From positions 29,946,001 through 30,010,000 of the forward strand of contig CM060733.1 in assembly GCA_030704615.1 (NCBI GenBank): DNA of 64,000 bases. Reading direction: 5' to 3'. This DNA is from Takakia lepidozioides. Lineage: Eukaryota > Plantae > Bryophyta. Shown in pieces: positions 2,287-53,999 of the stretch; the stretch's first letter is position 1; every line of letters starts with the position of its first letter. A program made the position numbers and the translations under genes. The notes below the pieces were generated by a model. That model did no database searches and was not told the DNA's origin. It worked only from the letters and a program-made list of their open reading frames with translations.

Positions 2287-2371
2287 TGTCGTGCGCATAC
2301 GTATCGCTACACAACTACGTCGCTGTCCAAACCACACCACACATATATGCACAATAAAGTAGTCTGCCACA
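2287..2371 (-). repeat. Terminal repeat A, copy 1 (85 bp, TG...CA)
   Basis: Identical to 2729-2813 except one substitution (ctacgtcgc vs ctacatcgc). Confidence 0.95.
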
Positions 2372-2372
2372 A

Positions 2373-2726
2373 TGATAAGAAAGTTAGAGAACACACTCTT
2401 GACACACAAGAAACATGAAATCCATCAACATCACTCTTTAAGATAATAGTCAAGCCAGGGGCACCCCAAGCTATGGGGACTCCACCCCACAACAACCTAT
2501 ACCCCTACATAAGAACACTCAGATTCTAAAGCATGAAGGAGCTTGGTCGCGCAGGCTCAACTCGAGAGAGATGAGCTGCGCGACTGACGCTCTCGTGAAG
2601 ATAAGACGGTTCAGGTGTCAAACTAAACTTGACACCTGATTTAACACTTGACCTAAATCCAAGTGTTAAATACAAATAACTAGCTTTATTCTAGTTAGTT
2701 TCACACTGTGCTTATTTAACTTGACA
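2373..2726 (-). repeat. Repeat B, copy 1 (about 354 bp, TG...CA)
   Basis: Matches 14007-14358. It differs in the first ~18 nt and at two CpG-type transitions that I could see. Confidence 0.95.
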
Positions 2727-2728
2727 GC

Positions 2729-2813
2729 TGTCGTGCGCATACGTATCGCTACACAACTACATCGCTGTCCAAACCACACCACACATATATGCACAATAAA
2801 GTAGTCTGCCACA
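2729..2813 (-). repeat. Repeat A, copy 2, start of the 3' LTR next to the PPT
   Basis: Copy of 2287-2371. On the minus strand it is directly preceded by AGGGGGGCGAT. Confidence 0.95.
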
Positions 2814-2824
2814 ATCGCCCCCCT
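2814..2824 (-). promoter_or_regulatory. Polypurine tract
   Basis: Minus strand reads AGGGGGGCGAT|TGTGGCAG, downstream of pol. Confidence 0.75.
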
Positions 2825-3072
2825 AGCTGGTGGATAGGTCCCTCTAACTCCAGATAGCTACAAGATGTAATAGCCACAGCCGTACTAAGTCCTCTATCAC
2901 TGTCCCTATTGTACTCAAACTCTATTGACCAAGAGGCCGGGTACAAGAGTAGCCCCATCGTTAGTCGCCGTCTTGCAATCTGTGAACTTGAACGAGGACC
3001 TCGTGTATTCAAGGTCTCCTGTAGCTGGGCCTTGCGTTGCTTGTTAGCCTTCCATGGTTGTATCCACTCCCA

Positions 3073-3300
3073 CTATCCAATGCAATGTGGACATAACCAA
3101 TCCCCATCCGGAACCATCTCAAGAGGTGGAGTCAAGCATCCCATATGCCAACCTCTAGAGCATCGATCACACACCAGCATGGTGGCTGCCCCTTTAGCAG
3201 ACCCACACAACATGCACCTCAAACTTGCAGATACCACTGCTAGGTTTGGGTCAATCCTGCCATCGACATTCGGAAGGTGACATGGCGCACAATTGCGCAC
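3073..3300 (-). CDS. PHD finger at the C-terminus of integrase
   Basis: CMLC...CDRC...WHMGC...WLCPHC gives the C4HC3 pattern. It is separated from the integrase C-terminal region by a frameshift/stop near 3320-3395. Confidence 0.9.
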   Translation of the reverse strand: MRNCAPCHLPNVDGRIDPNLAVVSASLRCMLCGSAKGAATMLVCDRCSRGWHMGCLTPPLEMVPDGDWLCPHCIG

Positions 3301-3392
3301 ATGGTCCTTCCAAGTTATGCCATCTCAACCCTCCAAGACCAAGACGCCTGAGGGCAAGACCTCTCGAACCCTCAAAATAACACGTCATGCAG

Positions 3393-6206
3393 TCACACCA
3401 AGGTCGTAGAAGCAGTCTGCTGCAGATAGACATAGTCACCAGGGTTGAATCTCCGAACCCCAGGACAATAGCCCCCACCACGTATGGTAGCATACCTCAA
3501 CGTATCACGGTGTTGTGCAATGGCAAGGTTCTCGAAAGCCATGGGCATGACTTTCTTGAACAACTCTGCACGCTGCTCACATGCACGTGCCCACACGTCC
3601 GGATCGTCAAGGTTAAGAATTGTAGCAGCTTCTCTGCGAATGGATGTAGGCAAATCCGGCTCTCGGCCGAAGAGAAGAAAGTATGGTGAGAAGGAGGCAA
3701 GTGATGCTTGCTTGCTGAATCTGTAGCCCATGATTAACTAGGGTAACTGAAGGTCCCAATCTCCTAGGTGTCCCTTCTGCAAGCCATACTTGCGCAAACC
3801 CCTCTTTACTGTCTGAACAACTCTCTCTGCCAAGCCATCGGCCTCAGGATGATCCCGAGAAGTGGTGCGGTGGTCTATCAAGGCCTTGTCACACAAAGCC
3901 TGAAACTCCCCCAAGAACTCTCTCCCTTGGTCCGTGAGTACCTCAGCTGGAGCACCGAATCGGCTAAGCACACAATCCAAGAATGCATATGCAGCTCCCT
4001 CACTAGCTTTATCAGGCAATGGAACCAACTCAATCCACTTGGAGAAGTGCTCCACCATCACCAACACGTACTCGTTGTGGTGCATGGTCAGTGGCAACGG
4101 CCCTGCAAAGTCAAGACTCCACCTGTAGCCCAATCCCATGATCGGAAGAAGGTGCAATTGTGGAGTAGGGGCGTTGAATGAAGCACGCACCATATCACAC
4201 ACCATGCACCTAGCCACAAATTGTTGCACCTCTGTGTGCATACCACGCCACCAATACTGCCCCTGTAGTAGACTATGAGTGCGTCGCACTCCAAAATGCC
4301 CCAACTCCTCGTGGGCATGCCGCACTAACCGTGCCCGCTGTGTTGGGTGAGGCACAATCCTCACTCGACCATCCTCCCACACTCGGAGCAGGTGTGTCTC
4401 CTTCCACTTGAACCTCTTGGCTCGTTGTAGGATCCGATCCCTCTCCTTGGCAGTCACAGTGGCTGCAGCGTCTCCAGTGCGGAGGTAGTCCAACACAACT
4501 GAATCCTCATGTATATCTTTGGCGCCACCTTGCTCATTGCTGGCCTCAGGGTCCTCAGACACTTGATCTACAGTCATCCCTATTGCAGGTCCAACTTGGC
4601 CTTCCGTTGCCAAGATACACAGAAATGCAGATGCATGCCATCCGGGCACCATCTCCTCGTCCGTCTCACCATGCCACCGAGCTCTAGTGTCATCCTGCTG
4701 GCTCGTGCATGGATTGCGACTCAACCCATCTGCATTGCGATTGACCAAACCCGGTCGATGCACAACCTGAAAGTCATATTCTTGAAGGATGAGTGCCCAC
4801 CGTGCAAGCTTCCCCGTAAGCTTGTTTGACTCCATCAACCACTTGAGTGGTTGGTGATCCGTGACAAGGGTGAAGAGATTGCCGTATAGATAGCACTTGA
4901 AGTGTGTCATGGCCCACACTGCAGCTAAGCATTCTCCCTCATATGAGCTATACTTAGACTCTGCAACGTTGTTCGAGCGGCTAGCATAAGCCACTACGAA
5001 CTCTCTTCCCTCATCATCCACCTGTGTGAGCACCGCTCCAAGCCCCAGCATGCTCCAATTTGTATGCAGCTGAAAAGGACGCCCCCTAATAGGCCGTCTC
5101 AAGATGGGCGCCGAGATCAACCTCGCCTTGAGCTCTTGAAAAGCTTGTTCTTGCTCATCTTCCCACTGCCACTCCTGGTCCACCTTGGTCAGCTTGGTTA
5201 GAGCCTTTGCAATGGCACTAAATCCCTTAACAAACCGTCTATAATAGTTTGCTAACCCCATGAAAGCTCGAACTCGGCTCACATCCGTGGGGCATGGAAC
5301 CTGTGCAATGGACTTTATCTTAGTCTGCTGTACCCCCAATCCTCCAGGATATATCAAGTGACCCAGATACTCAATCTGGTTGTGGAAAAACTTGCACTTT
5401 CCCGGATGTAACTTCAATCCGTGCGCCCTCAAGCGCTCAAATACCCCCTGAAGGTGTCTCTCATGCTCCTCCACCGTAACACTAAAGATGATGATGTCAT
5501 CTATGTAGCACCGAGCAAACTCCACCCTTGCTAGAATCATGTCCATGACTCTTTGAAACTCAGCAGGAGCGTTTTTAAGCCCAAATGGTAAGAACCGCCA
5601 CTGGTATAGGCAATCCTTCCCGTGTTCATTGATCCCCCAGAATGCCGTCTTCTGCTTATCCGCCTCCTTGATCGGCAACTGGTGATATCCGGATCGTAAA
5701 TCCAACGTGCTAAAGACCTTGGCATGCCCAATGGCATCAAAGATCTCCTCTGGTGTCGGCATAGCATACCTATCGGACTTGGTCTGACGATTTACAGGCC
5801 GGTAATCACCGCACATACGTCTCTCCGTCCAATTGCCATAGACATCCTTCTTGGCTGGCATCACTGTGGCTAAAGCATACTCTCCCCCATATAGCTCCAC
5901 CAAACCAGCCTCCCAAAGGTCCTGAGTTCTCATTTGAATCAAGGACCTCTCCATGTCACTGTATCTATAGGGTCTCCGAAAGATTGGCGTGTCAGTAGCC
6001 AATTCAATGCGAATGTCTTGACCCTTCAGTGCTCCTAAGTCCTTTAAACTGAAGGCAAAGCAATTCCTGTAAGCCCTCAGGAACCACCGTATACGTTGTC
6101 TCTCTCCTCCGGTGACAATGGGTCCAATGTCAGGCTCCCAATTGTCCTCCGTAACTGCAACCTTAAGTCCAGTGGGCTTAGAGGTAGAGGACGCGTCCCG
6201 TGGTTG
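3393..6206 (-). pseudogene. Gypsy pol: RT, RNase H, integrase
   Basis: RT motifs [28 protein letters not shown] and YIDD. RNase H motifs HTNWS-GLGAVL, EGECLAAVWA and TDHQPL. Integrase zinc finger H-H-C-C and DDE motifs WSLDF, TDQG and GLAER. One in-frame TAG at 3738-3740. Confidence 0.95.
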
Positions 6207-6499
6207 CTATGCCGCAACCTCTTGAGCAATACTCCCTGCCTGCTCAGTCAATGACAAGGCCTCATCCTGCCCCATCATCTCATCCTTGAGGACCTCATCA
6301 ACCCGAGAAGAATCCCCAACCTCATCCATCACAGCTGCCTTGGCTGCCAACTCCTTCTGAACCTCGAGCACCTCCCACGTGTGCCATGGATGCGGCCTGC
6401 ACCTCGTGGTCCTCACCTGCTCGCCCCCATTCGCTGCCTGTACCGTCTCGGTAGGCAGGGAGACCATGAATGGAAGTGTACTCCGTACTCTGCGCTGCT

Positions 6500-7460
6500 C
6501 GGCCATAGCCAAGCTGATAATCCAGGTCAAGCAATTGAGATCCATTGCTTGCCCCAACACCTGACGATGTGATGCCTCAGAAAGAGATGGCACCGCCGTG
6601 GTACCAGTGGTAAAACCCATTGCCCGCTCGCGCTCGTCAGCATTGGGCTCCACTAATTGTTGCAACTGGCTATCCCACAAGAGGCCAGGTCCACCATCCC
6701 GAAAAGCATGGGATCCTGGGAAGCTGAGCAGTGTAGGTAGTGTTGCTCGTGGTTGACCCACCCTGTTGACCACTGCCAAAGGCGAACGGTGATCGTGTTT
6801 CACACGTTGAGACTGTCTCCCTGTGTCCAAAATGCTATCCACTATGAGATGTGCTGGCCGCTGCACCCCATCAAATGCACGCTTGAGCAGTGCGGGTGGC
6901 ATCAAGTTAGTCCACCATAGTCGTGGACGATGAGCCCGTGACCCCACTGCAGCTGCATCCAGCAACACTGCTGACCCAAGCCACGACCAGACTTGATGCA
7001 CACTGGCCATCACCCTGGCCCGAGAATCGCCCATCAGTGGCACATTCTCCAAGATGTATGCTGGAGATACAGCTTGATGAAGCTGCAAGTGGCGCAAAAC
7101 CCGCACCATCTCCCAAAACAGACCCGTCCTTGAGTCTCGCAATCCATTGCCATGCCCGGCTGATGAATGCCCTTGGAAGGGCCAACCTGCCACTACCAGA
7201 TCAATGGAGCCAACCTGCTCCAAATCCTGCGCCCCCAGCAACGAAAGGTCTGCTGGCAAGGCTTGTTGGTATCCACGAACTGAAGACACTGGCAACAAAT
7301 CAGGGTACTGCTGTACCAACTGAGCAACCTGGCGCAGTGAGACGCGTCGTGCAGTCTCATCCCTCTCCATATACAGGTAACGTCGAACTCGTATACCTAC
7401 CTGCAGCACTGCAGCCAATCCAGTGCTGATCCCGCCAAACAAGTCCAGAAGACATATGCC
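6500..7460 (-). CDS. C5 cytosine DNA methyltransferase domain (Dnmt3-like, non-permuted) inside the polyprotein
   Basis: Motif I LDLFGGISTG; IV DLVVAGWPFQG (PCQ site, Cys replaced by Phe); V TGLFWE; VI LENV; VIII AHRPRLWWTNL; IX ERERAMGF; X QVLGQAMD. All lie within ORF 6207-8741. Confidence 0.92.
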
Positions 7461-7879
7461 TTCATCCGGGCACTGCCACACAAGAGGTGTAGTGTCCAAT
7501 GGCGACAACTGAGGTGGTCCTAGTGCAATCACCGCACTCTTGTCCTCTCCTGACGGTACGAAAGCGTCCACCCAGGCTTGTTGCACCCGTCCATCAGCAG
7601 CCTGCTGCAAATCTTTGCCCATACCCCACAATGGAGTGTGAGCAACCATGGCAGGCAACTCCGCCGTACCATGCATGTCATCCTGCTCTGCTGGAGGTGG
7701 CACATCCTTTGCATGGGCATTGCCTGCCAGCAACTCTCCAGGCCAACTAACTACAGCCGTAAAAGCGGCTAGTGTTGGCATCTTGCCCCGCTGGGCAGCC
7801 GCAATACCCCCAATGAATGTCACAGGGAGCTGTGCACGACGACCATCCCCTGACTGCCAGCCAGGCCTGTAGGATGCTG

Positions 7880-8190
7880 ACTCCTCCCAAAAGTCCAGGG
7901 TGAAGCCCATGGGGTATAACACTGCCCCACCAACGAGGACATCGTAAGAGACTGCGTCTGTCACAATGGCCTTGGCTCGCATCACTGAGCCATCTGTAGG
8001 GTGATCCGGCTGTAGTCCAATGGCCAACTCACGCCGTGTCATGTCCCGAGCCTGCTCTGATCCTCCCAGAGATGTCTGTATTTGGAAAAGACAAGGCTCC
8101 ATATCCACTTCCATGAGGCCCAAACCTGTGATAGCAGCTCTGCCCAACATCAGTGGCTGAGCTCCCGAGTCCAACAAGACCCGAAGTGGC
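7880..8190 (-). CDS. Retropepsin aspartic protease domain
   Basis: VLLDSGA at 8161-8181 and the C-terminal YDVLVGG motif. Confidence 0.85.
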
Positions 8191-8945
8191 CGGTACTTCT
8201 TGCCTGCCGGTCCACTCAATGAGAAAATGCCCTCATGGTTGTCTAACAAGACAACTCCAGGTGTCACCATGGCGCGCTCAAAGGCTGGCCTAGCTAGCAG
8301 TTCCGTCAATCTGGCAGCTGCTGCTTGCCAGGGCGCAGCCGTGGCAGTCTTCACCCTCAAATCCGAGGATCCCCCTGACACTACACCTTCCACTAACTCC
8401 GCAGAAGATGAAGTGACCTCCCTACTCTCACAGAGTGTTGCTGCTAGTCTGAACACTGCAACTGGTCTTACCCCCGGCGTCGCAATCATGGTTGCCGAGA
8501 ACAGTGGGGCTTGACACACAGAGGTGACTGCCCCCAATAACACACCGGCTGCACTAGCCTTGGCAGCAGGTGTCGGTGCTGCACGTGTAGCTCTCCCCAA
8601 TGGCATAGTAATCTCCGCCTCGGTAACAGTCGGGCGAGAACTAGGTGCCATGGATGGCGTCGACACTGTCTCCGCCAATGTGAATGACTGAGGAAGCCTC
8701 GCGTGACGGCTTGCCTCCCCACGCTGTGGATCCAATTCCACCTCTGCACCTCATGGCTCAAGAACTCGTGCTGCTCCTCGAGTCACGGCTACAGCAGACT
8801 CCACCTGCACTAGTGGTAGTGCTGCTCCGCACATGAATCCCATGCCTCCCATATCTCCTCCCTCAGGAGCAGGAGGTGGACCATCCCGCCTGGGAGCCGG
8901 TACCACCTGAGCTGTAGCCATGGCAGCGAACCTTTGCTCTAGCTG

Positions 8946-10412
8946 CTAAAGCCGGTTGGCCATGGCTTGGTCAACACCCTGACCTCCGCGTCCTTGGCCA
9001 TGTTGAGCTTGCCCTTGGCCTGCACCTCGTGCCCGACCACCTCGTCCTCTCTGGGCTGGTCCACCTCGCCCCCGGCCACCATTGTTCCCTTGGAACTGGC
9101 CTGGGCGCAATTCAGGATGCAAGTCATAACACTGGGCATCTCCATGCCCATACTTGCCACAATGCCCACACTGCAACTGTGCAGGTTGTGCTTGTGCCGG
9201 CCTTCTGCCACTCTCTGGGCAATCTCTCTTGACATGGGGTCCTCCACATGTCCAATATATCACCCCTGGTTGCTGTTGGCCTGCAAAAGATACCACGGGC
9301 CTCTGCACCTGAGGTCCCCTGTAAGCTCCATGGAACTTGGGTTGGGAAACCTTGCCCCCCTGACCATGCTGTTGGGCAGTCCCTTGTGCCTGTGGGCTGG
9401 CAGCTACGCCTCGTGCAGGCATGTCCTTGCCAAATCCAATGGTAACAACTCGCTCCTCCACCATGTTGAGCTCAATCCGCTCAGCCAGCAGAAATACATC
9501 TGCTAATGTGGGTTGGGCTGCTTGTAACAGGGTTGCATCCCGCACCCTTCTCCTGAGCTCCTTGTCCAAAATTCCATACCAGAACTGGATTGCCTGAGCT
9601 TCAGTAACCCCTTGGGTCACACTTATCAAGCGTCTCATACGAGTGTAGGCCTCTCGCAAGCTCTCACTGGGTTTGCGTTGGAAGTCTTGCAAACTTCGCA
9701 GCTTCTCTGTTTGTACACCTTGGTAGTTCCTCCACAACTCCTGGAAGAACTCCACCACCGGGTTGAATCTAGGCATATGTGTTGTAGTCGTGGCAGGAGG
9801 AGTAGTAGCACCTTTTGAACTGGTACCACTTGCAGAAGTACTGGCACTACTTGTTCCACTACTAGTGCTGGCAGTGGGAGATATTGATACTGATGCAGCT
9901 ACCGGTCGCGTCGTGCCTCGAGTAATGGAGACGTAGTCAGGTGACCAATATATCCTCCACTCCTCAATCTCTGCTTCATGTCCTCGCCTGAACTCGTGGT
10001 AATCGTCCATAGGCGGGCCTTCCAAATGCTGGAACAGTCCCTTCCACGCCATGAATGGGGTGAACAGCTGTGGATTGCGCATCTACTGCAAATCACACCA
10101 GCTGTTGAACTCCTGGATAAAGTCATCCAACTCAATTATGCCCACAGCTCCAGAGTACCTACGAGGCCCCTTGGTAGCTCCATACATCTCCTCCATGTCG
10201 TCCCACAACAATGGCGAATGAAACTGCACACCTGTTGATGAAGCCTCTGAGTCTGTGTCTGACTCTGCACTAGTTGAGGGTGGAGGTGAAGGTGGTCTGA
10301 AAGGAACACCTCGTCTGGTGAACCCACTCTCACTGCTACTGCCTGTAGCCGTACTCCCCTCAGAACCCCTGGGTAACTCCGTGATGACACTCACAATGTG
10401 CACCTCCCCCAC
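8946..10412 (-). pseudogene. Gag with zinc knuckles
   Basis: QRKPSESLREAYTRM retrotransposon-gag motif, CGHCGKYGHGDAQC knuckle plus a degenerate YWTCGGPHVKRDC, and an RGG-rich tail. In-frame TAG at 10083-10085. Same frame as PR-MTase and RT. Confidence 0.88.
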
Positions 10413-10931
10413 GTGACACTATAAAGCTCTGGTACTATTTCTAATGGTGACACGGGTGGGCACCTGTTGCAGTTTAAGGTTCATATCCCAGTGGCTCAGG
10501 GCACCTGCACCTGCATCCACCGCAAGAACTCCTATGGTTGGCTGGTCATCAACCCAGTCTCACCATAGAAGAAACACTGGTGGTTTTGCTGGTCATCACT
10601 CCAGCCTCACCACCGACAGCATACTCTAGGATTGACTGGTGATCAAATCCGGCCTAATCCCTATGAAAGCAAGCGCCCACACAAAACCAACATGGCGCAC
10701 AGTCAAGCATGCAGGTGTTGGGGGGGATCCAAACACAAGAAATCAAAACATCAACACCCCCACACCAAAATCCATCTGCAGTGCTGACCTGCAGAATATC
10801 CCAGCCCAAAACCCCGGACTGACTGGCCTCCACCAAGAGAGGCTTTGGCAACTACAAGTACAAGGTAATGAAAATAGTACAGAGATGGAGGGGAAGAATA
10901 GAAGCCCGACCCAGCAAGATCTAATCCTGAT

Positions 10932-11673
10932 CTATGCTATCAACTGCCAGACTTCTCTCAAAGTGCCTCGCTCTGCATGATAGTAAGGTGTAAGAGGTAT
11001 ATCTATGTCCAGAAACCTGCCACTAACCTTGTCACAAGCTACAGTAGCTCGCTCTAACCAACCCTCCTCCTCTTTCTGCCAGGTAGAGACAAAACAATAC
11101 TCCCCTATCTCCCGCTCACTGAACACTAAAGAAAACAAAGGTAGGGTCTGATAGTCTCTCAACTCGAAAGCTTTGAGACGGTTGCGGGTGTCCTCATTGC
11201 GGATGACTGCATCTCCTTCAAGCAAAACAAACTTGTCATTGCTAATGAACCCCCGCTCGTGATTGCCTTGTGCAGAACGTGTCCGGCTGCAATCATGTCT
11301 GATTGCACAAACTTGTGTAGCTCCTGCTCCAGTACACCACGGCCTTGTGGCTGAACACCTTGGTACCCGGGGCTGTCTTTGGCTGTGTTCCAAGCCTAGC
11401 TTTCACCCACTTTGGTATTTCACCTACAGCTGTAGAACTACTGGCTCCAACAGAGTTCTGACTGTCCAAAGCAATATTGAGGCCCTCAACGCCAACTACA
11501 GCAGTTTGTTGTCTACGGCTAATACCTGACTCCCAGTATGCAATCAACTCGTCCAACTGTTCTCCACTCAAATCAGTCTGAGTTCCTTGGGAAACATAAA
11601 TCTTGTTCCCTTGTGTGCACAGGCTAAGAGACGAGACCTGCCCTTCAATTACGTCCTCATTTCCCCCAGCCAT
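10932..11673 (-). pseudogene. Extra ORF upstream of gag, function unknown, disrupted
   Basis: Two overlapping element-sense ORFs (11293-11673 and 10932-11393) with protein-like composition and no recognised domain. Confidence 0.4.
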
Positions 11674-12049
11674 ACAAGGAGGACATCCACAGATTTGTTT
11701 CTCATATAGACCAGCACAGGTTCTAGAAACAAAATTGTGGATCTTTCATGGCACACTCAACACTCTAAAAATTCCATAGATTTTTAGCAGAGTCCAAAAA
11801 ACTAAAACCATTGAAATTAGATCAAAAAGGTTTTTTTTAAAAAATTATTATTATTATTTTAAAAATAAAATAAAATTTTAACACCAAAACGTTCTCGCCA
11901 TTAAACCCTGTTCCCACGTTATCTTAACAGGTTCCAAACGTGTTCATGTAGTTCTCACCACAGACTCCCTGAGTGTTTCGAACATACACCGGTGAACTGC
12001 TCTGCATCTCGCAAGCTGGCTGCTCAAGTCCATGGCCCACCTTGGATTA

Positions 12050-13539
<1,490 letters not shown>

Positions 13540-13990
13540 TTACCCAATGTACTTAGCAGGCACACGTCTTAACCACTCGTAGCTGTGTTCTTATGCCGTG
13601 CGATCGTCCACTCCTGGTATGCCTCTCAATCCAATCCAGCTTCCGTTCGATCCATCCCCTGCGCTGCGGCCTCACCCTCTCAGTGGAGCCTCCCTGACAA
13701 ATGGGAGCACAGGACGCGGTTACGGAGTTCGTCTCCATGCGCGCAGGCTGCAGTGTGAAGAAGCTTGAAAGTGGCAGGCAGCCATGGCCGAGTTGCTGCC
13801 GTGCTTCAACCACTCTACCTATACCCCCCGAGTCCCACCATTGCGACTGAGGATGTGAGACGAACTCAAGCTAGAGCCATTCTATGCTCATTGCTTGAGC
13901 TGTGTACAAGACCATGACCATCTATATTATAATAATGCTTAAAAAACAAAAACATCATATTTAGCTTGGCACTGGAAAACTAGATAGACG

Positions 13991-14006
13991 GCTCATCTCT
14001 CTCGAG
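13991..14006 (-). promoter_or_regulatory. Self-complementary primer binding site
   Basis: GCTCATCTCTCTCGAG(T) at 13991-14007 is the exact reverse complement of 14192-14208 inside repeat B. There is no TGG-starting tRNA PBS. Confidence 0.8.
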
Positions 14007-14358
14007 TGATAGAAAACTAGAAACACACTCTTGACACACAAGAAACATGAAATCCATCAACATCACTCTTTAAGATAATAGTCGAGCCAGGGGCACCCCA
14101 AGCTATGGGGACTCCACCCCACAACAACCTATACCCCTACATAAGAACACTCAGATTCTAAAGCATGAAGGAGCTCGGTCGCGCAGGCTCAACTCGAGAG
14201 AGATGAGCTGCGCGACTGACGCTCTCGTGAAGATAAGACGGTTCAGGTGTCAAACTAAACTTGACACCTGATTTAACACTTGACCTAAATCCAAGTGTTA
14301 AATACAAATAACTAGCTTTATTCTAGTTAGTTTCACACTGTGCTTATTTAACTTGACA
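14007..14358 (-). repeat. Repeat B, copy 2 (5' terminal repeat, 352 bp)
   Basis: Direct repeat of 2373-2726, TG...CA. Confidence 0.95.
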
Positions 14359-27436: not shown

Positions 27437-29040
27437 TTGGAAATGACGAGCCCATCAGGAATAGATGCACCCTTTTATGGTAAAGAGGTAGAAGATGTTG
27501 CTGACTGGTTAGAAAAGTTGCAACTAGTAGGAGATGTGAGAGATCTAACAGAGGACAAGCTATTCAAAGTAGCTAGGCCTAATTTGCAGGGAAGGGCAGA
27601 TGAGTGGTACAAACGCCAAAATCCCAAGCCTACTAACTGGGGAGAATTTCAAGAGTTGGTATTGGCGAAGTATGGACAAGTGGATCCCACGGAGCTCAAG
27701 ATGAAGCTTGACTCCATAAAGCAAGAAAGCAGGCAGCGCGTACAGACCTAGTACGATTGGCTGTCAAAGTTATTCACAAAGGGTCAGATAATAGATCTGG
27801 AGAAAAGGAGAAGATTTCTCAATGGGCTACGCCCAGAAATCATGCGCTTAATGCTGGGAACAAGATTTGTTAACATAGATGATGCTGTGGAAACGACACT
27901 GCAAGTGGAACGAGGATTGGGGGGCATAGGTGAGACACCTTTGGAGCCATTACATGAAGATGACTCTTATGAAGATCACACGTTGGGAGAAACACCGATG
28001 GACAGACGACTAGATGCACTAAATGTCACTTTGAAGAAGTATTTCGAGAAAGGAGCTGGAATCCCTGAGAGTTCAGGAAGCAGAACCTCGCCACATGGGC
28101 AAAGAGTCTGCAACACATGCCATCAGGAAGGACACACTTCAAACTTTTGTCCAACAAATAGAACACCTATTACATGTGGAAAATGCCACAGAATGGGTCA
28201 TAGGACAGAAGTATGTGGGGTAAGATGTTCGAACTGTAAGACATTGGGGCACTTTGAACATGAATGTCGGGCAAAGCAGGAACCAGGAAAGGGAGGACTA
28301 CCTACCACGAATCTACTCCAAATGATGTACAGTGACGAAGAAGCTGTCTTGGCAGAACTCAATGAGATATTCGATCATCATGAGATTAATGAAGTAAGGA
28401 TGCCAAAAAAAAGGGTGCCAATACCAACACTAATGAGTGCACCAGGGATGGAGCGGTCAATTTCAGGAGAGGCATCTGATGGACCAAATGTAACACCAAA
28501 AAGGATCTTGCAACCTCGAGTGAACACACCAAAGTGGCCAGAAACAGGAGGAGGCAGATCCAAGATCCTTAATCATTTTTACAAAGGTAGGATTTCAATG
28601 TCGCCCATGGATTTGATTTTGCAAGTGCCTGGAGAATTTGAGAAACTCAAAGGTCTAGTTAAAGTGGTGGAAAGGTCAATGTCCAGTGACTCTTCCACAG
28701 GAAGAACTCGGACAGCACAGACAGTGCAGGACATTTTGAAATCCCCAAACATAGCATATGCCTACAATGGCAGAGTTCGTGCATTACATGCGTTGGTCAC
28801 AATCGGTGATTTTCAGATCATGGGACAGGTTGACACTGGAGCTATGATCTCAGTCATAGCAGCAACTACAGTGAGGGATCTCGGTCTGATGAAATTAGTA
28901 GTGGATGATAAAGAAATGTCTTATAGAGTGGCATCAGGAGCAGTGGAGACTGCAATGGGAAGACTCGATGACATAAGCGTTACAGTGGGTAAGTTGACAA
29001 ACAGAGTATCCTTCATGGTTGTCAATACAGATACTTATAG
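27437..29040 (+). pseudogene. Gag (three CCHC knuckles) and protease
   Basis: Gag motifs EDVADWL, LQGRADEWY and IKQES. Knuckles CNTCHQEGHTSNFC, CGKCHRMGHRTEVC and CSNCKTLGHFEHEC. Protease motif QVDTGA. In-frame stop at 27749-27751. Confidence 0.88.
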
Positions 29041-29257
29041 GAGGCATATGATGCCTTGGCACAAATTCTGGTTAGGGATGCATGCTCTCAAGCATATGAG
29101 AATGAGCCAATGGATGAACCAGATGAGGATGATGATTTATGGATTGGGAGAAGACAGTCCAACAGCAAGAGGTTGAAACACAAAGGGTCTTCATGGCACA
29201 GCAAGGAATTAAGGACGAGTCTACATCTGAACCAATGAAACCAGCGCAGGAAGAACG

Positions 29258-30700
29258 TTGGGAACAGATCAAAGGCGTTTACAGATCAACCCTGGGCTCA
29301 CGAGAGAACAACGACAACAGCTTCTGGAGATAATCGAAGCAAATCAAATGGCTTTCGCCTTGAACAAAGCAGATCTGGGATTTTGTACAGCAGCTGAACA
29401 TGCTATAGACACCCAAGGATTTCCACCCTGCAGGAGTCAGCCTAAGCGATTGACTGAATGGGAAGAGGATGAAGTACAACGACAAATTGAGGTACTGATT
29501 CAGCAAGGAAAGATGCGAGAAAGCTCTTCGGAATACTCATGTCCAGTAAGTACTTTACCACTAAAGAAAGACGGCAGCAAACGCTTTTGTGGGGATTTCA
29601 GACCCCTCAATCAGCAAACCAGAAGGGACTCCTACCCTATGCCCATCATTCAAGATGTACTATGACAGTTGGGGAAATCCCAGTAGTTCTCAGCTTTGGA
29701 TCTTTAAAGTGGTTTTTGGCAAATCAAAATGCGTGAAGAGGATATCAAGAAGACTGCAGTCATTACACGGAGAGGTTTTTTTGAATGGACAGTCATGCCA
29801 TTCGGTCTGAAAAACGCAACTGCTACCTTCCAGAGAACTATGAACAAGATATTGGCTCAGGAGATTAAGGACCATGTGAAAGTTTTTGTTGATGACATCA
29901 ACATTCATAGTCCAAAGTGGGACAGTCATCTGAAACATGTCATGGGTGTTTTGAAGACGATGCAGGAGTACAATCTCAAGTTAAATCCAGACAAGTGCGA
30001 ATTTGGAAACCAGGAACTTGTATTCCTGGGTCATGTGGTTACCAAGGAAGGGATCAAACCAGATCCAAGGAAGGTGATTGCAATACAGAAGTTTCCCATA
30101 CCAAGGAATGTAACCGCTGTAAAAAGCTACCTGGGGGTCACTAACTACTACAGGTGCTACATGAAGGAGTATGCCCAAGTTGCGAGCCCTCTTTCTGACC
30201 TCACGAAGAAGGAGCAAACGTTTGTGTGGACTCACCAAGCTCAAAATGCGTTCGAGGCATTGCGACTTAAGTTGATCGAGGCTCCTATCCTGGTACGACC
30301 TGATTTCCTTAAACCTTTCATTCTTGATGTTGATTGGTCGAAGAAAGGGGTAGGTGCTGTTTTATCACAAAAAAAAGGACGAAGAGAACACGTAATTGCT
30401 TATGCTAGTAAGGCATTGTCCGAAGCAGAGGAACTATCACCCTATGGAGGGAGAATGTTACGCTCTCGTTTGGGGAATCCTACTCTTTCGCCAATATCTT
30501 TATGGCACATCATTTGTTGTTCGAACGGATCATAAGCCATTGGAATGGCTGGCTACAGTTAGCGACGCCTATGGAAGAAGAGGTAGGTGGATCATGATGC
30601 TACAGGATTTTGATTTCAAGATACAACACAGACCAAGGATGAAGCATGGGAATGTTAATGCTTTAAGTAGGCTTCCAGTAGAGACTGAACCAGACAGAAG
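29258..30700 (+). pseudogene. RT and RNase H
   Basis: RFCGDFRPLN, MPFGLKNA, FVDD, DVDWSKKGVGAVL, EGECYALVW and TDHKPL, with stops and frameshifts. Confidence 0.92.
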
Positions 30701-33428
30701 AGACCCTGAGATACTTGAGCACAGAAATCACAAGGCGAGGAAAGGAAGAGAGTGCCACTCATAATTTATTGGAGTTGTCTCTTGAGGAAGATGTTGCACA
30801 TGCCATCTTGATAGACCTACATCAGACTGACAGCACAGTGTTAGGAGTGAGACAGAGAAGGTTGAAAGAAGTGAAGACTCATGAAATAGATGAAATTCAC
30901 TACTACTTGTTGGCCTGGGCCATTTGGCAGTTCAAAGACTACTTACATAAGCTGCCTTTTGTGGTAAAAACTGACCTACAACCTCTCAAATGGAAGGAAG
31001 CAGGAAAAGTCAGAGGGACAGACTTGACTGATGGATTTATCTTTACTGTGGTGAGTCACCAAGCAGCTCCTGAACAGCAGCAAACTGCGAGTGAAGAAAG
31101 CTGTAGTCAGTCCAACAGCGAGGGTACTGACCAGCAAAAGGAGAGCAAAAAGAAAGTAAAACAAGTTAGGTTTGAATTGCTACCAGGAGTTAACTACCTA
31201 TACTGACAGCGTGTGGGAAGAAATGACAGAATTACCTGAGAGACAGAGGGGTTATGGGCTTTTGTCTGAAGACTTTCCATGGAAACACACCTGTGAGGCA
31301 CAGTCAACTGATAACAGTGAGGGAAAAGGGGAGCAAGCAAAAAGAAAGACGATGTTGAGATAAAGTTGTGCCAAGGGAGGCAATGACTCACAGCAAGAGG
31401 ATGGGGAACATCACCAGCAGTTGGCAACCATGGAGAACGCGCCTGCACAGGCATCAAAACAAAGGGATAATTTTATTGAGAAAGGTGTGACACTAGCAAA
31501 CTGGAAGCCAGCATTAGAGAAAATCCAGTGCAGTCTGAATCTGCCACAGGGAAAGAAAAATAGAATGAGTGAAATGTCATATGGATTACCTGAGGAAGAA
31601 AGCATTAGTGAGCAGAGATTTCACCAAAGGAGTTGTTTTGAGAGTTCATCTGTGAGGAAAAACCAGCATGTCAACTTGAGATGAGAGGAAGAGAGCAATT
31701 CAAAGTGGATTTTTTTGAATAGCAAAAATGTGAAGAAAAGGGCAGGTCAAATCAGTTACTCATAGAACAAGAGAAAGGTCAGCTGAGAGAGGATCATGGA
31801 GAGAAAGACCTTGAGAGTTTGATCTGTAGAAGCCCGAGAGAAAGGAGAGCTAGCTGGTCACCATGCTGGGGTAAGCCTTGAAAGTTCAGCCTGTGAGAAA
31901 CTAGAAAATCACAGTGAGAAAAGAGAGAAGAGTTTGGCAAAACCGCAAGACGAGACCATAAAAAACAATGACTACTCTCAGCAAAAAGGGAGGAAGCTTC
32001 AGCAAGGGAAAATAAGGAAGGATGAGAATCTAACAGGCAAGGGCATTCATCTTCAGGAAACACTTCAGCAAAGCAGTAAAAAATCTGGCAAGGATGGAGC
32101 AACATGGATGTCACAGTCAGTTTTTGCAAGGTTATCAATGAGAGAACTTGACTATGTTTTTGCTTGGATATCTGGAAGGAGAACAACTGGACCAGAAGTG
32201 GTGACAGCAGGTCAGCTGAACACCTGTGCAAAACAAGGAGAACTGGAGGACAAAATTTGGGTGTTGAGACCCAACCAGCAAAGTCTTGACAAAGAGAGAC
32301 CTACTGATGGATTAGAAAAGGCACAAGCTGAAGAAAGAAGGGAAGAAGGGGGGTTATCTTTGACTGGCGGACAGATCTGGAGCAATACTGAAAATCATGA
32401 CCTGCAAGCAAAGGCAACACGGCTGAATGAGGAAAAGAAAGTTGATGAAGTGAAGGTGAAGAAAGTTCACACATTCCAAAACAAATCATATCTTCAGAAA
32501 GGGGCAATCAGATGTGGAACGAGTAGCGGCAGGTGCAAGGGAGCAAGCGAGGCAAAGCATGATCAAGAGGAAGGGCAAACAGGGAGAAGATGGAATGGCG
32601 TGATGAGTGAATACTCAGCTGGAGCAAATCTGGTCAGCTTTAGAGGAGTGAAGATTGAACAGCAGGCCAGCCCTGTTTTGTATTTAAAGGAAGGTCAACG
32701 TCAATGGAAGCCGACCGATGAAAAAGGAGGATAGGTCAGAAGGGAAGACTCCTTATCCTTTTTTGGACTGATACGGAGCATTACAGGCATCATTAACTTG
32801 CACGCCAACAAAGGATATGAGATAAGAGACAGATGGGAAAACAAAGAACCAAGTCAGCCAGATGGGGAAGCAAGAAAGGAGCAAAGAGACAAAATTTGGG
32901 AGTTGAAAACTGAATGTTCAGCAAAATCTTGACAAAGGGAGACCTACTGATGTATTCAAAGAGGAAGAAACTGAAGGAAAAGAGGCGGAAGAAACTTTAT
33001 CTTCGACTGGCAGATGAGGAGCAATTCTGAAAAATATGACCTGTGCACGAAGGCAATGCATCACCAAACAAAGGTAGAATTGGGGTAAAAAAGGGACCAG
33101 CCACTAAAGGATGAAGCAATGACAATGGAAGTTCAGTTTTCCTGTCAAATATCACATCACAAAGAAGAGGGAATAATTCCTGAACCAGTGTCCCACAACG
33201 GTGAAAATGAAGAAGCAAGAAGTGAACAAGACAACCAGATTTGGGAGCCTTCAGCAGAACAGCAAATTACTAAATGGAGACCTGCGTACGGAGATCAAAA
33301 CACACCAAAGGGGTTCAAGTGGGTTGTCACCATGGAAGGAGACGATGGAGATGGTCAGAGGGATGGGCGTGAGGAGAGGGAGATAGCCGGGATAAGAAGA
33401 AATGAAGAACTGAAGGACCAGGCCGGTA

Positions 33429-35377: not shown

Positions 35378-36073
35378 GATTGTACTCATAAGACGTTGTT
35401 TGCCGTAGCCTTGTTGCCATTGATCCCGCGCCCAGTTTGAGCGGGAACAAAAGGTACAGAACCTACCTCTGTCAGGGGCTGACATTGGTAGTAAGACTTA
35501 CCTTCATATATAGAATTAATCCGGGTTTTCCAGATATCCTTTAGAAATCCCTTCACACAAGCATCAATCTGCTGTGTGTGATTTGCCCAAAAACTAGGCC
35601 TCAGGAGGGCTTGGGCTTTTGGCTCAGCCTCGAGACTTTGAAAGTTGGTAAACAGGGGTACAGGCACAATTCCCTTGATAGATTTGAAGAGATCGTCTCT
35701 TTGGTGACAGAACCCCGGACAGTGTATCGGTAAATGAATTCTATCTTCAGATGGCCCACACAACGGACAATTGCACTCTCCCTTTCCTCTCTGCTTCTGT
35801 TTGCTGTTCAAAGGTAGGCTTCCTGCCCTAAGTTTAAATTTCAGTCTAGTGCCGAGAGTAGGTAGACCCGTGAGGTCATCCAAGATGGCATCCCCCATGT
35901 CACTGACTGGAAACAAGTTCAGGGAAGTTTTCTGCCTAACTTCATTTTCATCAGACAATCTCATGGCAACAGACATGGCTTTGGACATTACAGCCTCTGC
36001 CAGGACTCAGCCTCTGTTTCCAAGATATAGAGTCGATTAACTTAGGATATCTGGTGTTGGGCATATGTTGCAG
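35378..36073 (-). mobile_element. 5'-truncated LINE 3' end, copy 1
   Basis: C-terminal CPLC...EDRIHLPIHC zinc finger. Near-identical to 52831-53620, with an internal deletion near 36000. Confidence 0.85.
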
Positions 36074-38305: not shown

Positions 38306-38360
38306 CTTGGTATCAGAGCTTAGAGTTCAGTACGTGATCGTCCTTGGGATTGGCCTCATC

Positions 38361-41300
38361 ATGGGGTCGGGCAAGCCAAAGCGAAAGCGGAACGGCCCAA
38401 AAGATGATGATCCTAGTGAGCCCGATGGGGGCGACGTGTCACCGAGGCGGCCGTTTGAGGAAGCGATGCATGTCTCCGAAAATGAGGCCGCTCAAGAGCG
38501 GGAGGAATCTGAGGAGTCGGAGCCCAAGGAATCCCTGAGAGCTCCGACCGACCAACATATGTCTCCCATGCCGGCAGCCTTTTGGGAAGGGTTGTTGGCG
38601 CAATTTGGCGGGACGTTGAAAGACGTGTTGAAGGCGGCTAATGCCACTTCCACTAAGGCAAAATTTAAGGTGAAGCCTAAGGAACCCGACACCTTCCAGG
38701 GCGTCCGAAATCGGAAGGCACTCAACACTTGGCTCCTGGAGCTAGAGCAGTACTTCCGGGCGGCCAAGTTGAGTGACGAAGACCGGCTGGAAGTGGCTCC
38801 CACCTATTTGAGGGGCTATGCTCAACAATGGTGGCAGAAACGCCTTCACGACCGAGGTCCAAGCCCGAAAACCTTGAATTGGAGTGGGTTCAAGGAATTG
38901 ATGAAAAGGCAGTTTGTGCCCCTCAATGCGTCCTGGCTTGCCCGGGACAAGATGAGGAATTTGAAGCAAACAGATGACATTCGGGGATATGTCCAGGCTT
39001 TCAATGTGCTGTTGCTCGAAGTCGCGGACATGGCAGAACCAGAAATGGTCTTCAACTTTGTGGCAGGACTGGCCCCATGGGCTAGGCGGAAGTTGGAGGA
39101 GAAGCCACCTAAGACTTTGAACGAGGCAATTGAGAGGGCTGAATGTTTCTCGGATGTCCCTAGGGGTGAAAGACAAGGCCGTACGGAGCTGAACCACAAG
39201 AAGACCCGGCGGGAAGGTGACGCCTTCCGACCGGAAAAGAAGTGGGATAGGCCACGCGACGACAATGGCACGTGGAAATCGAAGGGAGGGCCTTCACAAG
39301 TCAAGGCGGCACCCGGTGCTTCAAAAGGAAAAGCGGGTGGAGCGGCCTATGGCGGACAGAAGACGACCTTTGATGGAGTGTGTTTCAATTGCGGGGAGCC
39401 CGGGCACATGGCCAAGAAGTGCACGAAGCCCCGACAATTGAACATGACTCGGGCGACCACAGAGCTGTCGGAAGATACCATCAGTCGCTTGGTGGAAGCG
39501 GTGGTCGCCAGGACTTGCAAGGTAGGCAAATTTTCTTGTGAACTGTATCAGAAAACTGGCGCCTTACGTAAAGGGAGTCAGTTATTGTTCGTGGATGGGA
39601 TAATATCCGGAACTAACGTGTCATTGTTGGTGGATACAGGAGCGTCGCACTCCTTCATGACACCGACAACGGTACAAAAGCTGGGACTCCCGACAAGTGA
39701 CGTGGGGGCCTCTATTGAGGTGCGTTCTGCCAAAGGAGAACCGCAATTGGCGACGAGGCTGGCGTTCGATGTCCCTCTTCAACTGGGGAAATGGGAAGGA
39801 CGTGAGAACTTCACCATTTGCGAGATCGATGGAGTGGATCTCATTTTGGGGATGACTTTTTTGAGCAATCCGGAGCGGTCATAGATGGCCGCAAAAGAGT
39901 AGTCACGCTACCATGTGGGGATGGTGGCGAAGTCTTACGAGTATTGGAAACGCCCAAACCCGTGGGAGGGCGAATAAACCTTCTGTCAGCAAGGGAGTGG
40001 GCCGTGGATGAGGCACATGAGCCCCAGTTTTTGCTTTACATTAGAGAAGTGAAGGGAGAAGGCGATGGGGAGCCGAGCCCAGATTGGATCAAGGGGATTT
40101 TGGAGAGATACCAGGATGTGATGCCGGAGGATTTACCAAGCGGCTTGCCACCGCGAAGAGGAGTTGACCACAAGATTGAGGTGATACCAGGATTGGAACC
40201 GCCTGCCAAGGCGCCCTACCGGTTGAGCCACAGAGAGTTGGTCGAGCTGAAGACTCGGCTCAAAGATCTAATGTCAAAGGGGTACATCCGGCCGAGTAAG
40301 TCACCTTACGGAGCCCTGGTGCTATTCGCAGACAAGAAGGATGGGACGCTGCGGATGTGTGTCGATTACAGGGCTTTGAATAAGGTGACTATCAAAAACC
40401 GGTGTCCTTTGCCAAGGATCGACGACCTTTTCGATCGGTTGGCAGGAGCGAAGTATTTCAGCCGGATCGATCTGCGCTCCGGCTATCATCAAATTCGAGT
40501 GGCGGAAGGAGATGAGGAGAAGACCGCGTGCAGGACAAGGTATGGTTCATATGAGTGCTTGGAGATGCCTTTTGGGCTCACCAATGCACCCGCGACCTTT
40601 AGCACGCTGATGAACAGCCTTTTCCAGGAGTGGTTGGATGACTTTGTGATCGTGTACATCGACGACATCTTGGTGTATTCGAAAACAAAGGAGGAGCACC
40701 TGGAGCACCTCAAAAGGGTGTTCCAGAAATTGCGGGAAGGGAAGCTGTATGCCAAAGCTTCAAAGTGCGAATTCGGGGTCACAAAAGTGGAGTTCCTGGG
40801 GCATGTGATTACACGGGATGGGATCAAAATGGATGACAGAAAGGTGAGGGCGATCTTGGACTGGGAGCCTTCGACTTTGGTCCCGGGAATGCGATCCTTC
40901 CTAGGACTCGCCTCCTATTACCGGAAGTATGTGAGAAATTTCGCCAAGATCGCGGGGCCGTTGTCAGACCTTCTGTGTAAATCCAAAGTCTGGGTATGGA
41001 ACACCTTGTGTGGCCAAGCTTTTGCTGAATTGAAGCAGCGGTTCCAACCTAGTGAAGGTGTTTACGGACAATGTTACGGTGAAGTATTTTGCCACGCAGC
41101 CCAAGTTGTCCCCAAAACAACTTAGGTGGCAAGATACTTTGGTGGTGTTTGACGTGGATATCCAATACAAACCGGGACGTGACAATGTGGTGGCCGATGC
41201 TTTAAGTAGAAAGCAGCAGCTCCTGTTGGTGTACAGGGGCGAGACGGCACTCCAAAGGAAGATCCGGAAGGCTTGCTAGAAGGATGAGCTGGCGAAGTCC

Positions 41301-52830: not shown

Positions 52831-53843
52831 ATTGTACTCATAAGACGTTGTTTGCCGTAGCCTTGTGGCCATTGACCCCGCGCCCAGTTTGAGCGGGAAC
52901 AAAAGGGACAGAACCTACCTCTGTCAGGGGCTGACGTTGGTAGTAAGACTTACCTCCTTATAAAGAATTAATCCGGGTTTTCCAGATATCCTCTAGAAAT
53001 CCCTTCACACAAGCATCAATCTGCTGTGTGTGATTTGCCCAAAAACTAGGCCTCAGGAGGGCCTGGGCTTTTGGCTCAGCCTCGAGACTTTCAAAGTTGG
53101 TAAACAGGGGTACAGGCACAATTCCCTTAATAGATTTGAAGAGAGCGTCTCTTTGGTGAGAGAACCCCGGACAGTGTATCAGAAAATGAATACTGTCTTC
53201 AGATTGCCCACACAACGGGCAATTGCACTCTCCCTTTCCTCTCTGCTTCTGTTTGCTGTTCAAAGGTAGGCTTCCTGCCCTGAGTTTAAATTTCAGTCTA
53301 GTGCCGAGAGTGGGTAGACCCTTGAGGTCATCCAAGATGTCCTCCCCCATGTCACAGACTGGAAACAAGTTCAGGGAAGTTTTCTGCCTAACTTCATTTT
53401 CATCAGACAATCTCATGGCCTCAGACATGGCTGAGGACACTACAGCCTCTAAGTCAGATTTATCTAGCAGGGTCAAGACTTGCGGATCCAGGTCCAGGTC
53501 CTTGAGGATCTCTTCTATTCTCTTCTGCCAGGACTTAGCCTGTTTGACAGGGCGGTCCTGTTTCCAAGATATAGAGTCGATTAATTTAGGATATCTGGTG
53601 TTGGGCATATGTTGCAGCTGACCCCACCATCTGACCTTGAATTCATCTCGTCGGGAGCTTAAGGACGGAATGCCAAACTCACCCCGAACAGCCACATTGG
53701 CTGTTTTGGAGCATGCTGACATACACTCCTTAAGCACCCCCACTTGAATGGATTCTAGAGACTTAGCCTGGTTGGAGTTATCAACCCATATAGCAGATCC
53801 GTACTCCAAGGCAGGTCTAATAACGCGACAAAGCATGGTTTTC

Positions 53844-53845
<2 letters not shown>
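52831..53845 (-). mobile_element. 5'-truncated LINE, copy 2 (RT C-terminus plus CCHC)
   Basis: IRPALEYGSAIW...VRGEFGIPSLSSRR...RYPK...CPLCGQSEDSIHFLIHC, with (GA)n on both flanks. Confidence 0.9.
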
Positions 53846-53874
<29 letters not shown>

Positions 53875-53999
53875 GAGGGGGGGGGGGGGATATCCTCGTG
53901 GAGATTCTTACGGCCATGTATAATTGCACAGGTGTTGATCAGATACGGTCTGGAGATTGTTTAGGGGCCTGGTTACATCCCCAATCGGCCCCCTGTTCA

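Follow-up and report, generated by a model that had tools for sequence, protein, structure and literature searches.

The window analyzed here is a stretch of 64,000 nucleotides (nt) from the bryophyte Takakia lepidozioides (assembly GCA_030704615.1, contig CM060733.1, positions 29,946,001 to 30,010,000 of the forward strand). On its minus strand, between positions 2287 and 14358, it carries what is very probably a 12-kb Ty3/Gypsy retrotransposon—a recently inserted, nonfunctional copy of a high-copy family. Inside the polyprotein of this element, between the protease (PR) and the reverse transcriptase (RT), lies a genuine, unpermuted cytosine methyltransferase (MTase) domain of the Dnmt3 type.

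Architecture of the Element

In the sense direction, the element consists of repeat A, a 3.6-kb leader, the coding frame, repeat B, 2 bases, repeat A, 16 bases, and repeat B (Table 1). With 2 differences in 337 nt between the A copies and 1 in 87 nt between the B copies, the terminal repeats are 99.3% identical overall, and the outer termini read TG...CA. The inner A/B junction of the repeats (..ACA gc TGT..) is a copy of the two termini of the element joined together. Between 3393 and 10412, the minus strand forms a single reading frame of ~2,340 codons, which is free of insertions and deletions over ~7 kb. It encodes the Gypsy domain set in order—gag, PR, RT, RNase H, and DDE integrase (IN)—with the MTase in frame and intronless. 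A stop codon after the tail of the MTase divides this frame into open reading frame 1 (ORF1) and ORF2, and a PHD finger follows at the C terminus of IN.

Compared with the corresponding element of Marchantia polymorpha, ORF1 is collinear at 53% identity over 1359 amino acids (aa), and ORF2 and the PHD finger are each 77% identical. Pfam assigns RVT_1 (E 4e-32), RT_RNaseH (1.5e-34), Integrase_H2C2 (2.7e-16), and rve (4e-13) to ORF 3738-6002. At the position of the retropepsin stretch of the window, relatives show PF13650/PF13975.

The Methyltransferase Domain

A preliminary description of this stretch had noted C5-MTase motifs in canonical order within the protease ORF and had called the domain Dnmt3-like and not permuted in the manner of plant DRM enzymes. 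Both statements stand. The motifs run from 7451 down to 6534, and the Pfam search proposed in that description yields a match of PF00145 (DNA_methylase) in ORF 6207-8741 with E 3.8e-9 (36.9 bits vs a curated cutoff of 22). Chains of the DNMT3A catalytic domain are collinear with the same ORF (E 3.6e-8). The MTase signal is far beyond chance.

A family profile was built from an alignment of 46 domain sequences from relatives and run against all PDB chains. The best matches are DNMT3A (3.5e-27), DNMT3C, and DNMT3B (both ~1e-25), followed by the weaker matches DRM (1e-14), M.HhaI (1e-10), and DNMT2 (6e-9); no DNMT1 chain is among the profile matches at E <=0.01. The DRM match spans motifs I-V only, which map onto the C-terminal half of DRM; hence, DRM is the permuted enzyme and the domain of the element is not. 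An AlphaFold2 model computed with the 46-sequence alignment as input reaches a pLDDT (predicted local distance difference test) of 94.8 and a pTM (predicted template modeling score) of 0.93. The top 50 PDB matches of this model in Foldseek are all DNMT3A, DNMT3B, or DNMT3C, with E values down to 2.6e-19 and template modeling (TM) scores up to 0.84. A look-up in the ESM Atlas returned generic DNA_methylase clusters only. Neither PWWP nor ADD gives a Pfam match in ORF1 of the window or of the Marchantia element. The placement with DNMT3 rests herein on the ranking of the profile against the PDB and on the fold search; the Klebsormidium homologues group with Dnmt3 in the study that described them (PMC5890265).

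Relatives and Abundance

A word-indexed search returned 55 proteins. The best relatives, 64-70% identical, belong to Calypogeia fissa and to many gene models of Marchantia polymorpha; further relatives occur in Sphagnum (58%) and in Klebsormidium, where KFL_000540020 (40%, E 1.4e-34) is a direct homologue. In a 14-sequence alignment, AGWPCQG is found in every relative that covers motif IV. In an exhaustive HMMER search, 1.84 billion cluster representatives gave 2,525 matches at E <=1e-3, including 247 at E <=1e-30, and many matches sit within polyproteins of 1,500-3,400 aa.

The Marchantia copy at the Mp_4g09160 locus (L001) consists of repeat A, a 2.7-kb leader, an ORF1 of 1,346 codons, one in-frame stop, an ORF2 of 1,043 codons, and the repeats B-A-B. 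Its frame of 2390 codons is broken by this single stop, with gag-PR-MTase in ORF1 and RT-RNase H-IN-PHD in ORF2, and its repeats are 99-100% identical. By its sequence, the L001 copy looks intact. Split repeats are also present in Calypogeia, in the arrangement B-A-B-A-B; the long terminal repeats of Sphagnum look ordinary and lie near gag.

Two further Marchantia copies, L005 and L006 (GCA_003032435.1), have different flanking genes and are 100% identical over 8,048 nt, with a stop in the protease of both. This identity was considered as proof of recent transposition and rejected, as the adjoining sequence is also ~96% alike, with offsets; that adjoining sequence is largely the upstream part of the elements themselves. 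The pair could be a recent duplication, a defective copy mobilized in trans, or an assembly artefact.

In the source species, 29,628 contigs from one sequencing run map to positions 6000-8800 of the window at >=85% identity, with the family reaching extreme abundance in four runs of this species. A second species contributes a 5-kb contig at ~94% identity, and the run X10, guessed to be RNA, includes contigs that measure up to 2.2 kb and are ~94-97% identical. Because of the abundance in the source-species runs and the presence in a second species, the elements constitute a very abundant resident family and not a contamination. The preliminary description was, thus, right in placing the MTase in a land-plant genome, its closest relatives being those of liverworts and a moss and its 2.8 kb attracting tens of thousands of contigs.

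An architecture survey covered 218 fetched proteins, and a maximum-likelihood tree was calculated from 149 MTase domains. Two architectures are found among the 218 proteins: class I, (gag)-PR-MTase-(RT...), and class II, RT-RNase H-MTase-IN-PHD. The tree separates into two clades of 50 and 99 rows with a support of 100 in the Shimodaira-Hasegawa-like approximate likelihood ratio test (SH-aLRT), and each clade contains one architecture only, plus fragments of unassignable architecture. The window falls into a 14-row clade with Marchantia, Calypogeia, and sequences from Logan and JGI (SH-aLRT 100), away from Klebsormidium-like sequences. The class II group is large; it comprises, for example, the proteins P0063, P0067, P0073, and P0080, among them the 'pol' of Scenedesmus sp. 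PABB004, and a C-terminal PHD finger is again present.

Selection on the Methyltransferase

Rates of nonsynonymous (dN) and synonymous (dS) substitution were calculated pairwise by the Nei-Gojobori method (NG86). For the MTase, the Marchantia subfamilies L001 and L005 yield a dS of 0.30, a dN of 0.045, and a dN/dS of 0.15, and the metagenome elements L007 and L008 a dN/dS of 0.13. The pairs with 0.15 and 0.13 are unsaturated or moderately saturated, and the dS of more distant pairs, which range from 0.08 to 0.14, is saturated. Throughout the pairs, conservation of the MTase exceeds that of the region of gag and PR and approximately equals that of RT-IN. The least conserved part of the protein is the linker around the ORF1 stop, with ~43% aa identity and a dN/dS of 0.44-0.54. 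Judged from these rates, the MTase of the family is under purifying selection. The low dN/dS, together with a conservation close to that of RT-IN, rules out a neutral capture at the family level. The dN/dS estimate, too, had been proposed in the preliminary description; at 0.13-0.15, and with the domain present across the family, it speaks against such a capture.

A Conserved Stop Codon after the Methyltransferase

The junction between ORF1 and ORF2 was compared in seven loci from six sources (Table 1). In 7/7 loci, a stop codon occupies the homologous place and is followed by a CAR codon, and in 7/7 loci ORF2 continues in frame. For the family, this context can be written UAG-CAA-YYA. The codons neighboring the stop are poorly conserved. 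In line with a termination at this place, 47 of ~62 class I proteins contain no RT, and most class I ORF1 products stop <= ~160 aa past the MTase core. Tobamoviruses and other plant viruses use the sequence UAG-CARYYA as their type I readthrough signal (PMC5382211), and the hexamer context in the window conforms to this motif.

On this comparative evidence, the 6207-6209 stop characterizes the family and does not represent damage; most probably, it is a programmed leaky stop. From the conserved leaky-stop context it follows that Gag-PR-MTase is probably the main product, with RT-RNase H-IN-PHD being added by readthrough.

State of the Window Copy

The identity of the window copy and its dead state are, taken together, highly probable. 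In-frame stops are found at 10083-10085 (TAG), 8946-8948 (TAG), 8751-8753 (TGA), 6207-6209 (TAG), 3738-3740 (TAG), and 3393-3395 (TGA). Besides the conserved stop at 6207, six premature stops are counted—10083, 8946, 8751, 3738, and two in the PHD frame. Near 3396-3402, a frameshift moves the C-terminal part of IN and the PHD finger into another frame, in which the two additional stops lie. The preliminary description had assigned five ORFs to one frame 'broken only by single stop codons' and had taken all of these stops as breakage. The common frame and the stops are real, whereas the TGA at 8751 and the frameshift had escaped attention, and the stop at 6207 has to be exempted from the breakage as a conserved feature in a leaky-stop context; the other stops represent decay.

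Within the MTase, motif IV reads PFQ in the window copy vs PCQ in the family, a deviation that the preliminary description had implied. The column of this catalytic cysteine (Cys108) is Cys in >=90% of 45 relatives. Because its catalytic Cys is replaced by Phe, the window copy cannot make an active enzyme. The domain deviates at 3 of 46 highly conserved columns in total (C108F, A253T, and R311H), and at the latter two columns the source-species reads indicate that nearly all other host copies keep the family residue. In addition, a Cys of the first zinc knuckle is changed to Tyr. For a query of 91 aa around motif IV, the closest protein match is 73% identical, so that the database searched evidently lacks proteins of the host.

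Compared with the family majority, several C-to-T or G-to-A changes at CpG sites are seen, for instance CGG to TGG at 6989 and 6086 and CGT to CAT at 6568. Transitions account for ~3/4 of all variant places when source-species reads are placed on the window; among 40 of the 340 variant places listed from these reads, none falls on 7176-7178 or on the nonsense codons. The substitution pattern fits the decay of methylated DNA. The observed/expected ratio of CpG is 0.50-0.56 in the element vs 0.58 in the rest of the window and gives no element-specific signal of self-methylation.

The Leader and Further Features

The leader of L001 is similar in kind to that of the window. Between species, its conservation is confined to a single block of ~130 nt, which lies ~90-210 nt upstream of the likely gag Met and contains two copies of a ~24-nt motif with one hairpin each. 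The block is 74-77% identical in nt to its counterparts in Calypogeia, Marchantia, and a metagenome element, with 27 nt being identical to the latter. RNAalifold on five sequences predicts 25 pairs, of which 7 show compensatory changes, and no Rfam family matched the block. This double hairpin may be a packaging or dimerization signal. Further upstream, the leader includes an exon-sized, monodehydroascorbate-reductase-like Pyr_redox_2 fragment that has no counterpart in the loci of relatives and is probably a captured host gene fragment. The frame before the first gag Met (10197-10412, minus strand) matches positions 9797-10000 of L001 (VITE..GFTR.G..) without containing an ATG, which may reflect a non-AUG translation start or conservation at the RNA level.

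Table 1. Coordinates of the features of the element in the window, and ORF1/ORF2 junctions of the compared loci
Feature	Position	Strand	Remarks
Repeat A, 5' copy (sense)	14022-14358	-	Outer end reads TG.. in sense
Long 5' leader between repeat A and gag frame	10413-14021	-	
Pyr_redox_2 fragment, monodehydroascorbate-reductase-like, exon-sized, in leader	13174-13539	-	Sense orientation; PF07992 E 6.2e-9
Noncoding double hairpin upstream of gag	10498-10625	-	Two CUGG-AGUGAUGA-CCAG apical hairpins
ORF1 frame: gag, protease, MTase	6207-10412	-	Likely gag Met 10194-10196
CCHC knuckle of gag	9129-9170	-	
Retropepsin active-site stretch VLLDSGAQPLMLG	8142-8180	-	Signature VLLDSGA
DNMT3-like C5 cytosine MTase domain	6465-7457	-	Motifs I-X, canonical order; unpermuted
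Motif I LLDLFGGISTG	7419-7451	-	S-adenosylmethionine (SAM)-binding type FxGxG
Motif IV AGWPFQG	7170-7190	-	
Motif IV codon TTC (Phe) in place of catalytic Cys	7176-7178	-	
Motif VI ENV	7038-7058	-	
Motif VIII (HRPRLWW)	6906-6944	-	
Motif IX (ERERAMGF)	6612-6641	-	
Motif X (GQAMD)	6534-6560	-	
Stop and context UAG-CAA-CCA ending ORF1 after MTase tail	6201-6209	-	Candidate programmed readthrough site
ORF2 frame: RT, RNase H, integrase zinc finger, DDE core	3741-6200	-	YIDD 5484-5510
Decay stop TAG in integrase	3738-3740	-	Marchantia has Trp
Frameshift zone and TGA 3393-3395	3393-3402	-	tblastn frame change
PHD finger at integrase C terminus	3082-3216	-	PF00628 E 9.5e-12; stop-free stretch 3076-3324
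Repeat B, inner copy	2729-2815	-	
Repeat A, 3' copy	2390-2726	-	
Repeat B, terminal copy	2287-2373	-	Outer end reads ..CA in sense
Junction, window			TAG CAA CCA
Junction, Marchantia L005/L006			TAG CAA CCA
Junction, Marchantia L001			TAG CAA CAA
Junction, Calypogeia			TAG CAA TCA
Junction, ENA metagenome L007			TAG CAA TCA
Junction, Sphagnum			TAA CAA CCC
Junction, Logan contig L009			TAG CAG TTA

The window consists mostly of transposons. Two unrelated Gypsy elements (RT ~37% identical to that of the element at 2287-14358) and one Copia element are located at 27842-31206 (+), 38307-42645 (+), and 44328-47485 (-). The ORFs 35386-35988 (-) and 52958-53929 (-) are similar to each other and resemble the tail of a further repeated element.

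Proposed Working of Intact Members

In an intact member of the family, the genomic RNA would be translated into Gag-PR-MTase, with most ribosomes terminating after the MTase. A few percent would read through the leaky stop and produce Gag-PR-MTase-RT-RNase H-IN-PHD. Both products would enter the particles via Gag, and the protease would free the MTase, which would then use SAM to methylate freshly synthesized cDNA or a new insertion. The PHD finger might tether IN to a histone-tail state or to chromatin, as chromodomains do in chromoviruses. None of these steps is possible for the window copy because of the Phe in motif IV, the Tyr in the zinc knuckle, the six stops, and the frameshift.

Self-methylation of cDNA or of the insertion site had already been put forward in the preliminary description and is the same idea as one suggested by the authors of the 2018 study, whose candidate benefits are a disguise as self DNA that is already methylated, a protected cDNA, and self-limitation (PMC5890265). 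As the selected function, self-methylation of the cDNA or the new insertion is a candidate with less than an even chance. A wider proposal is more tentative still and rather doubtful: that bryophyte Gypsy elements with DNMT3 and PHD are active or recently so, that the leaky stop supplies many MTases per particle for methylating new cDNA or insertions, and that they are a real contributor to the methylome at the copy number of this host.

Alternative Explanations

The near identity of the terminal repeats, the long frame without insertions or deletions, and an MTase deviating at three conserved columns only might suggest that the window copy is intact or nearly so and active with a working MTase. 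Its sequence refutes this, however, as the catalytic Cys is Phe, six stops are premature, the frame shifts near 3396-3402, and a Cys of the first zinc knuckle is Tyr; a rescue would require every lesion to be a sequencing error, which makes a working copy highly improbable. The loss of the catalytic Cys, together with the second apparently captured host fragment in the leader of the same copy, would instead be expected if the MTase were a neutral passenger, that is, a host DNMT3 fragment picked up by this copy or a small subfamily. This is just as hard to credit, given that the domain occupies the same place in Marchantia, Calypogeia, Sphagnum, Klebsormidium, and many metagenome contigs, that the dN/dS is low, and that the catalytic motifs are >=90% conserved. 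That the contig is an algal or other contamination could be suspected from the sole published host being an alga. The probability of this is close to nil: the MTase nests with Marchantia and Calypogeia and away from Klebsormidium-like sequences, the family is extremely abundant in four source-species runs and recurs at ~94% identity in a second species, and the window lies deep, by tens of megabases, within a large sequence piece.

Two other explanations carry more weight, although both remain unlikely. The MTase of the family could act on RNA, like DNMT2, or serve as a noncatalytic partner or decoy of a host DNMT3 in the manner of DNMT3L. The Klebsormidium domain showed no activity in yeast (PMC5890265), and the MTase, being fused C-terminally to Gag, would adjoin packaged RNA; against this stand the conserved PCQ, ENV, and SAM-binding motifs, contrary to a dead DNMT3L-like partner, and a sequence and fold much nearer to DNMT3A/B/C than to DNMT2. 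Slightly better are the prospects of reading the stop at 6207-6209 as ordinary decay or a plain ORF boundary, with ORF2 being expressed by frameshift, reinitiation, or a separate RNA, or with an ancestrally uninterrupted frame. The retention of a homologous stop with CAR and an in-frame ORF2 in seven loci from six sources, its position within a linker of low aa identity and elevated dN/dS, and the fit of the hexamer to the type I motif of plant viruses all favor the programmed leaky stop over this explanation. Several observations nevertheless weigh against the preferred interpretation, which comprises the leaky stop, a DNA-methylating family, and a recently inserted window copy. The basal class I lineage P0066 (2188 aa) runs from the MTase into RT without a stop; the JGI contig L008 has lost CAA by a 7-nt deletion and has ORF2 in another frame; and the junction in Klebsormidium is ambiguous, with a TGA-CAA stop ~20 codons after motif X and RT in another frame in what is a truncated copy. 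The evidence for readthrough is comparative throughout, DNA methylation by any family member is predicted from sequence, and host transcription depends solely on run X10, which is guessed to be RNA. Finally, given repeats that are only 0.7% apart, six nonsense lesions are more than would be expected; the excess may point to a defective source copy mobilized in trans or to homogenized repeats.

Significance

What a transposon gains from carrying an enzyme that normally silences transposons is a question open since 2018. The sole streptophyte example had been a family with few copies in an alga that does not lend itself easily to manipulation. The family is now placed in liverworts and a moss, with a very high copy number in Takakia, and an apparently uninterrupted copy in Marchantia polymorpha makes its role testable in a model plant by routine reporter assays, mutants, and methylome profiling. 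The leaky stop, if true, would set the dosage of the MTase at the level of Gag and not at the level of RT. The sister architecture, which occurs in a Scenedesmus protein and in many sequences from metagenomes, suggests that the green lineage has an old and widely distributed toolkit of MTase plus PHD. As for the window copy, it is an ordinary dead relic.

Comparison with Known Systems

Animal DNMT3A, DNMT3B, and DNMT3C are the best matches in sequence and fold and share the same motif order. However, the identity is only ~20%, and the domain of the element is longer by ~60 residues, most of which lie between motifs VIII and IX. The element carries neither PWWP nor ADD on the same chain, its PHD finger being located at the far end of IN, and the residue after the motif IV Cys in DNMT3A differs from the PCQ of the family. 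Plant DRM1/2 belong to the Dnmt3 superfamily as well and are the second-best solved relatives (E 1e-14). In contrast to the order I to X of the element, they are circularly permuted, with motifs VI-X preceding I-V.

Retrotransposons encoding a C5-MTase are also known from Symbiodinium as SymbioDIRS-Dnmt3 and SymbioLINE-Dnmt (PMC5890265). SymbioDIRS-Dnmt3 encodes its Dnmt3-like MTase in Pol, and CG de novo activity has been demonstrated for this enzyme (PMC5890265). These elements differ from the Gypsy family by belonging to the tyrosine recombinase DIRS and the LINE (long interspersed nuclear element) classes and by residing in another host kingdom, and their MTases are independent acquisitions according to the authors (PMC5890265).

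The putative readthrough stop after the MTase resembles the tobamovirus type (PMC5382211), reading UAG-CAA-CCA in the window and UAG-CAA-UCA, UAG-CAG-UUA, and UAG-CAA-CCA in relatives. The viral stop precedes the polymerase domain of a replicase, whereas the stop of this retrotransposon follows PR and MTase and does not come directly after gag.

The class II Gypsy elements, represented by the Scenedesmus sp. PABB004 'pol' (KAF8056149.1), have an MTase that is 35-45% identical, a PHD finger at the C terminus of IN, and a Gypsy-type RT, RNase H, and IN. They differ in the position of the MTase between RNase H and IN, and the MTase clades are separate (SH-aLRT 100).

In the literature searched, Gypsy-DNMT3 elements are described only by de Mendoza 2018 (PMC5890265) and only from Klebsormidium; a preprint of 2026 (10.64898/2026.05.21.726589) and a paper of 2025 (PMC12344493) cite them as a streptophyte feature. 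No paper was found on land-plant members, the leaky stop, the PHD finger, or the second architecture, which, the literature search being incomplete, is absence of evidence only. The main text of PMC5890265 mentions neither the PHD finger nor readthrough.

KnitGypsy-Dnmt3 from Klebsormidium nitens (PMC5890265) is likewise a Ty3/Gypsy element with an intronless, unpermuted Dnmt3-type MTase upstream of RT, and despite its DDE integrase it has DIRS-like split repeats in the arrangement A-coding-B-A-B (PMC5890265). The fetched Klebsormidium locus shows a terminal PHD finger too. The algal MTase is under purifying selection with a Ka/Ks <0.2 (PMC5890265), in agreement with the dN/dS of 0.13-0.15 in the window family. 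In yeast, the KnitGypsy-Dnmt3 domain gave no methylation, a result called inconclusive by the authors (PMC5890265). Differences are the algal host with few copies (PMC5890265) vs the land-plant hosts with a very high copy number in Takakia, and the bryophyte MTases forming a clade of their own in the tree. The preliminary description had proposed a distinct, possibly undescribed retroelement system. This can no longer be upheld, as the position of the MTase and the split repeats were already given for KnitGypsy-Dnmt3 (PMC5890265). The family in Takakia is very likely the land-plant branch of the streptophyte Gypsy-DNMT3 elements, and the element described here is a land-plant member of an already described kind.

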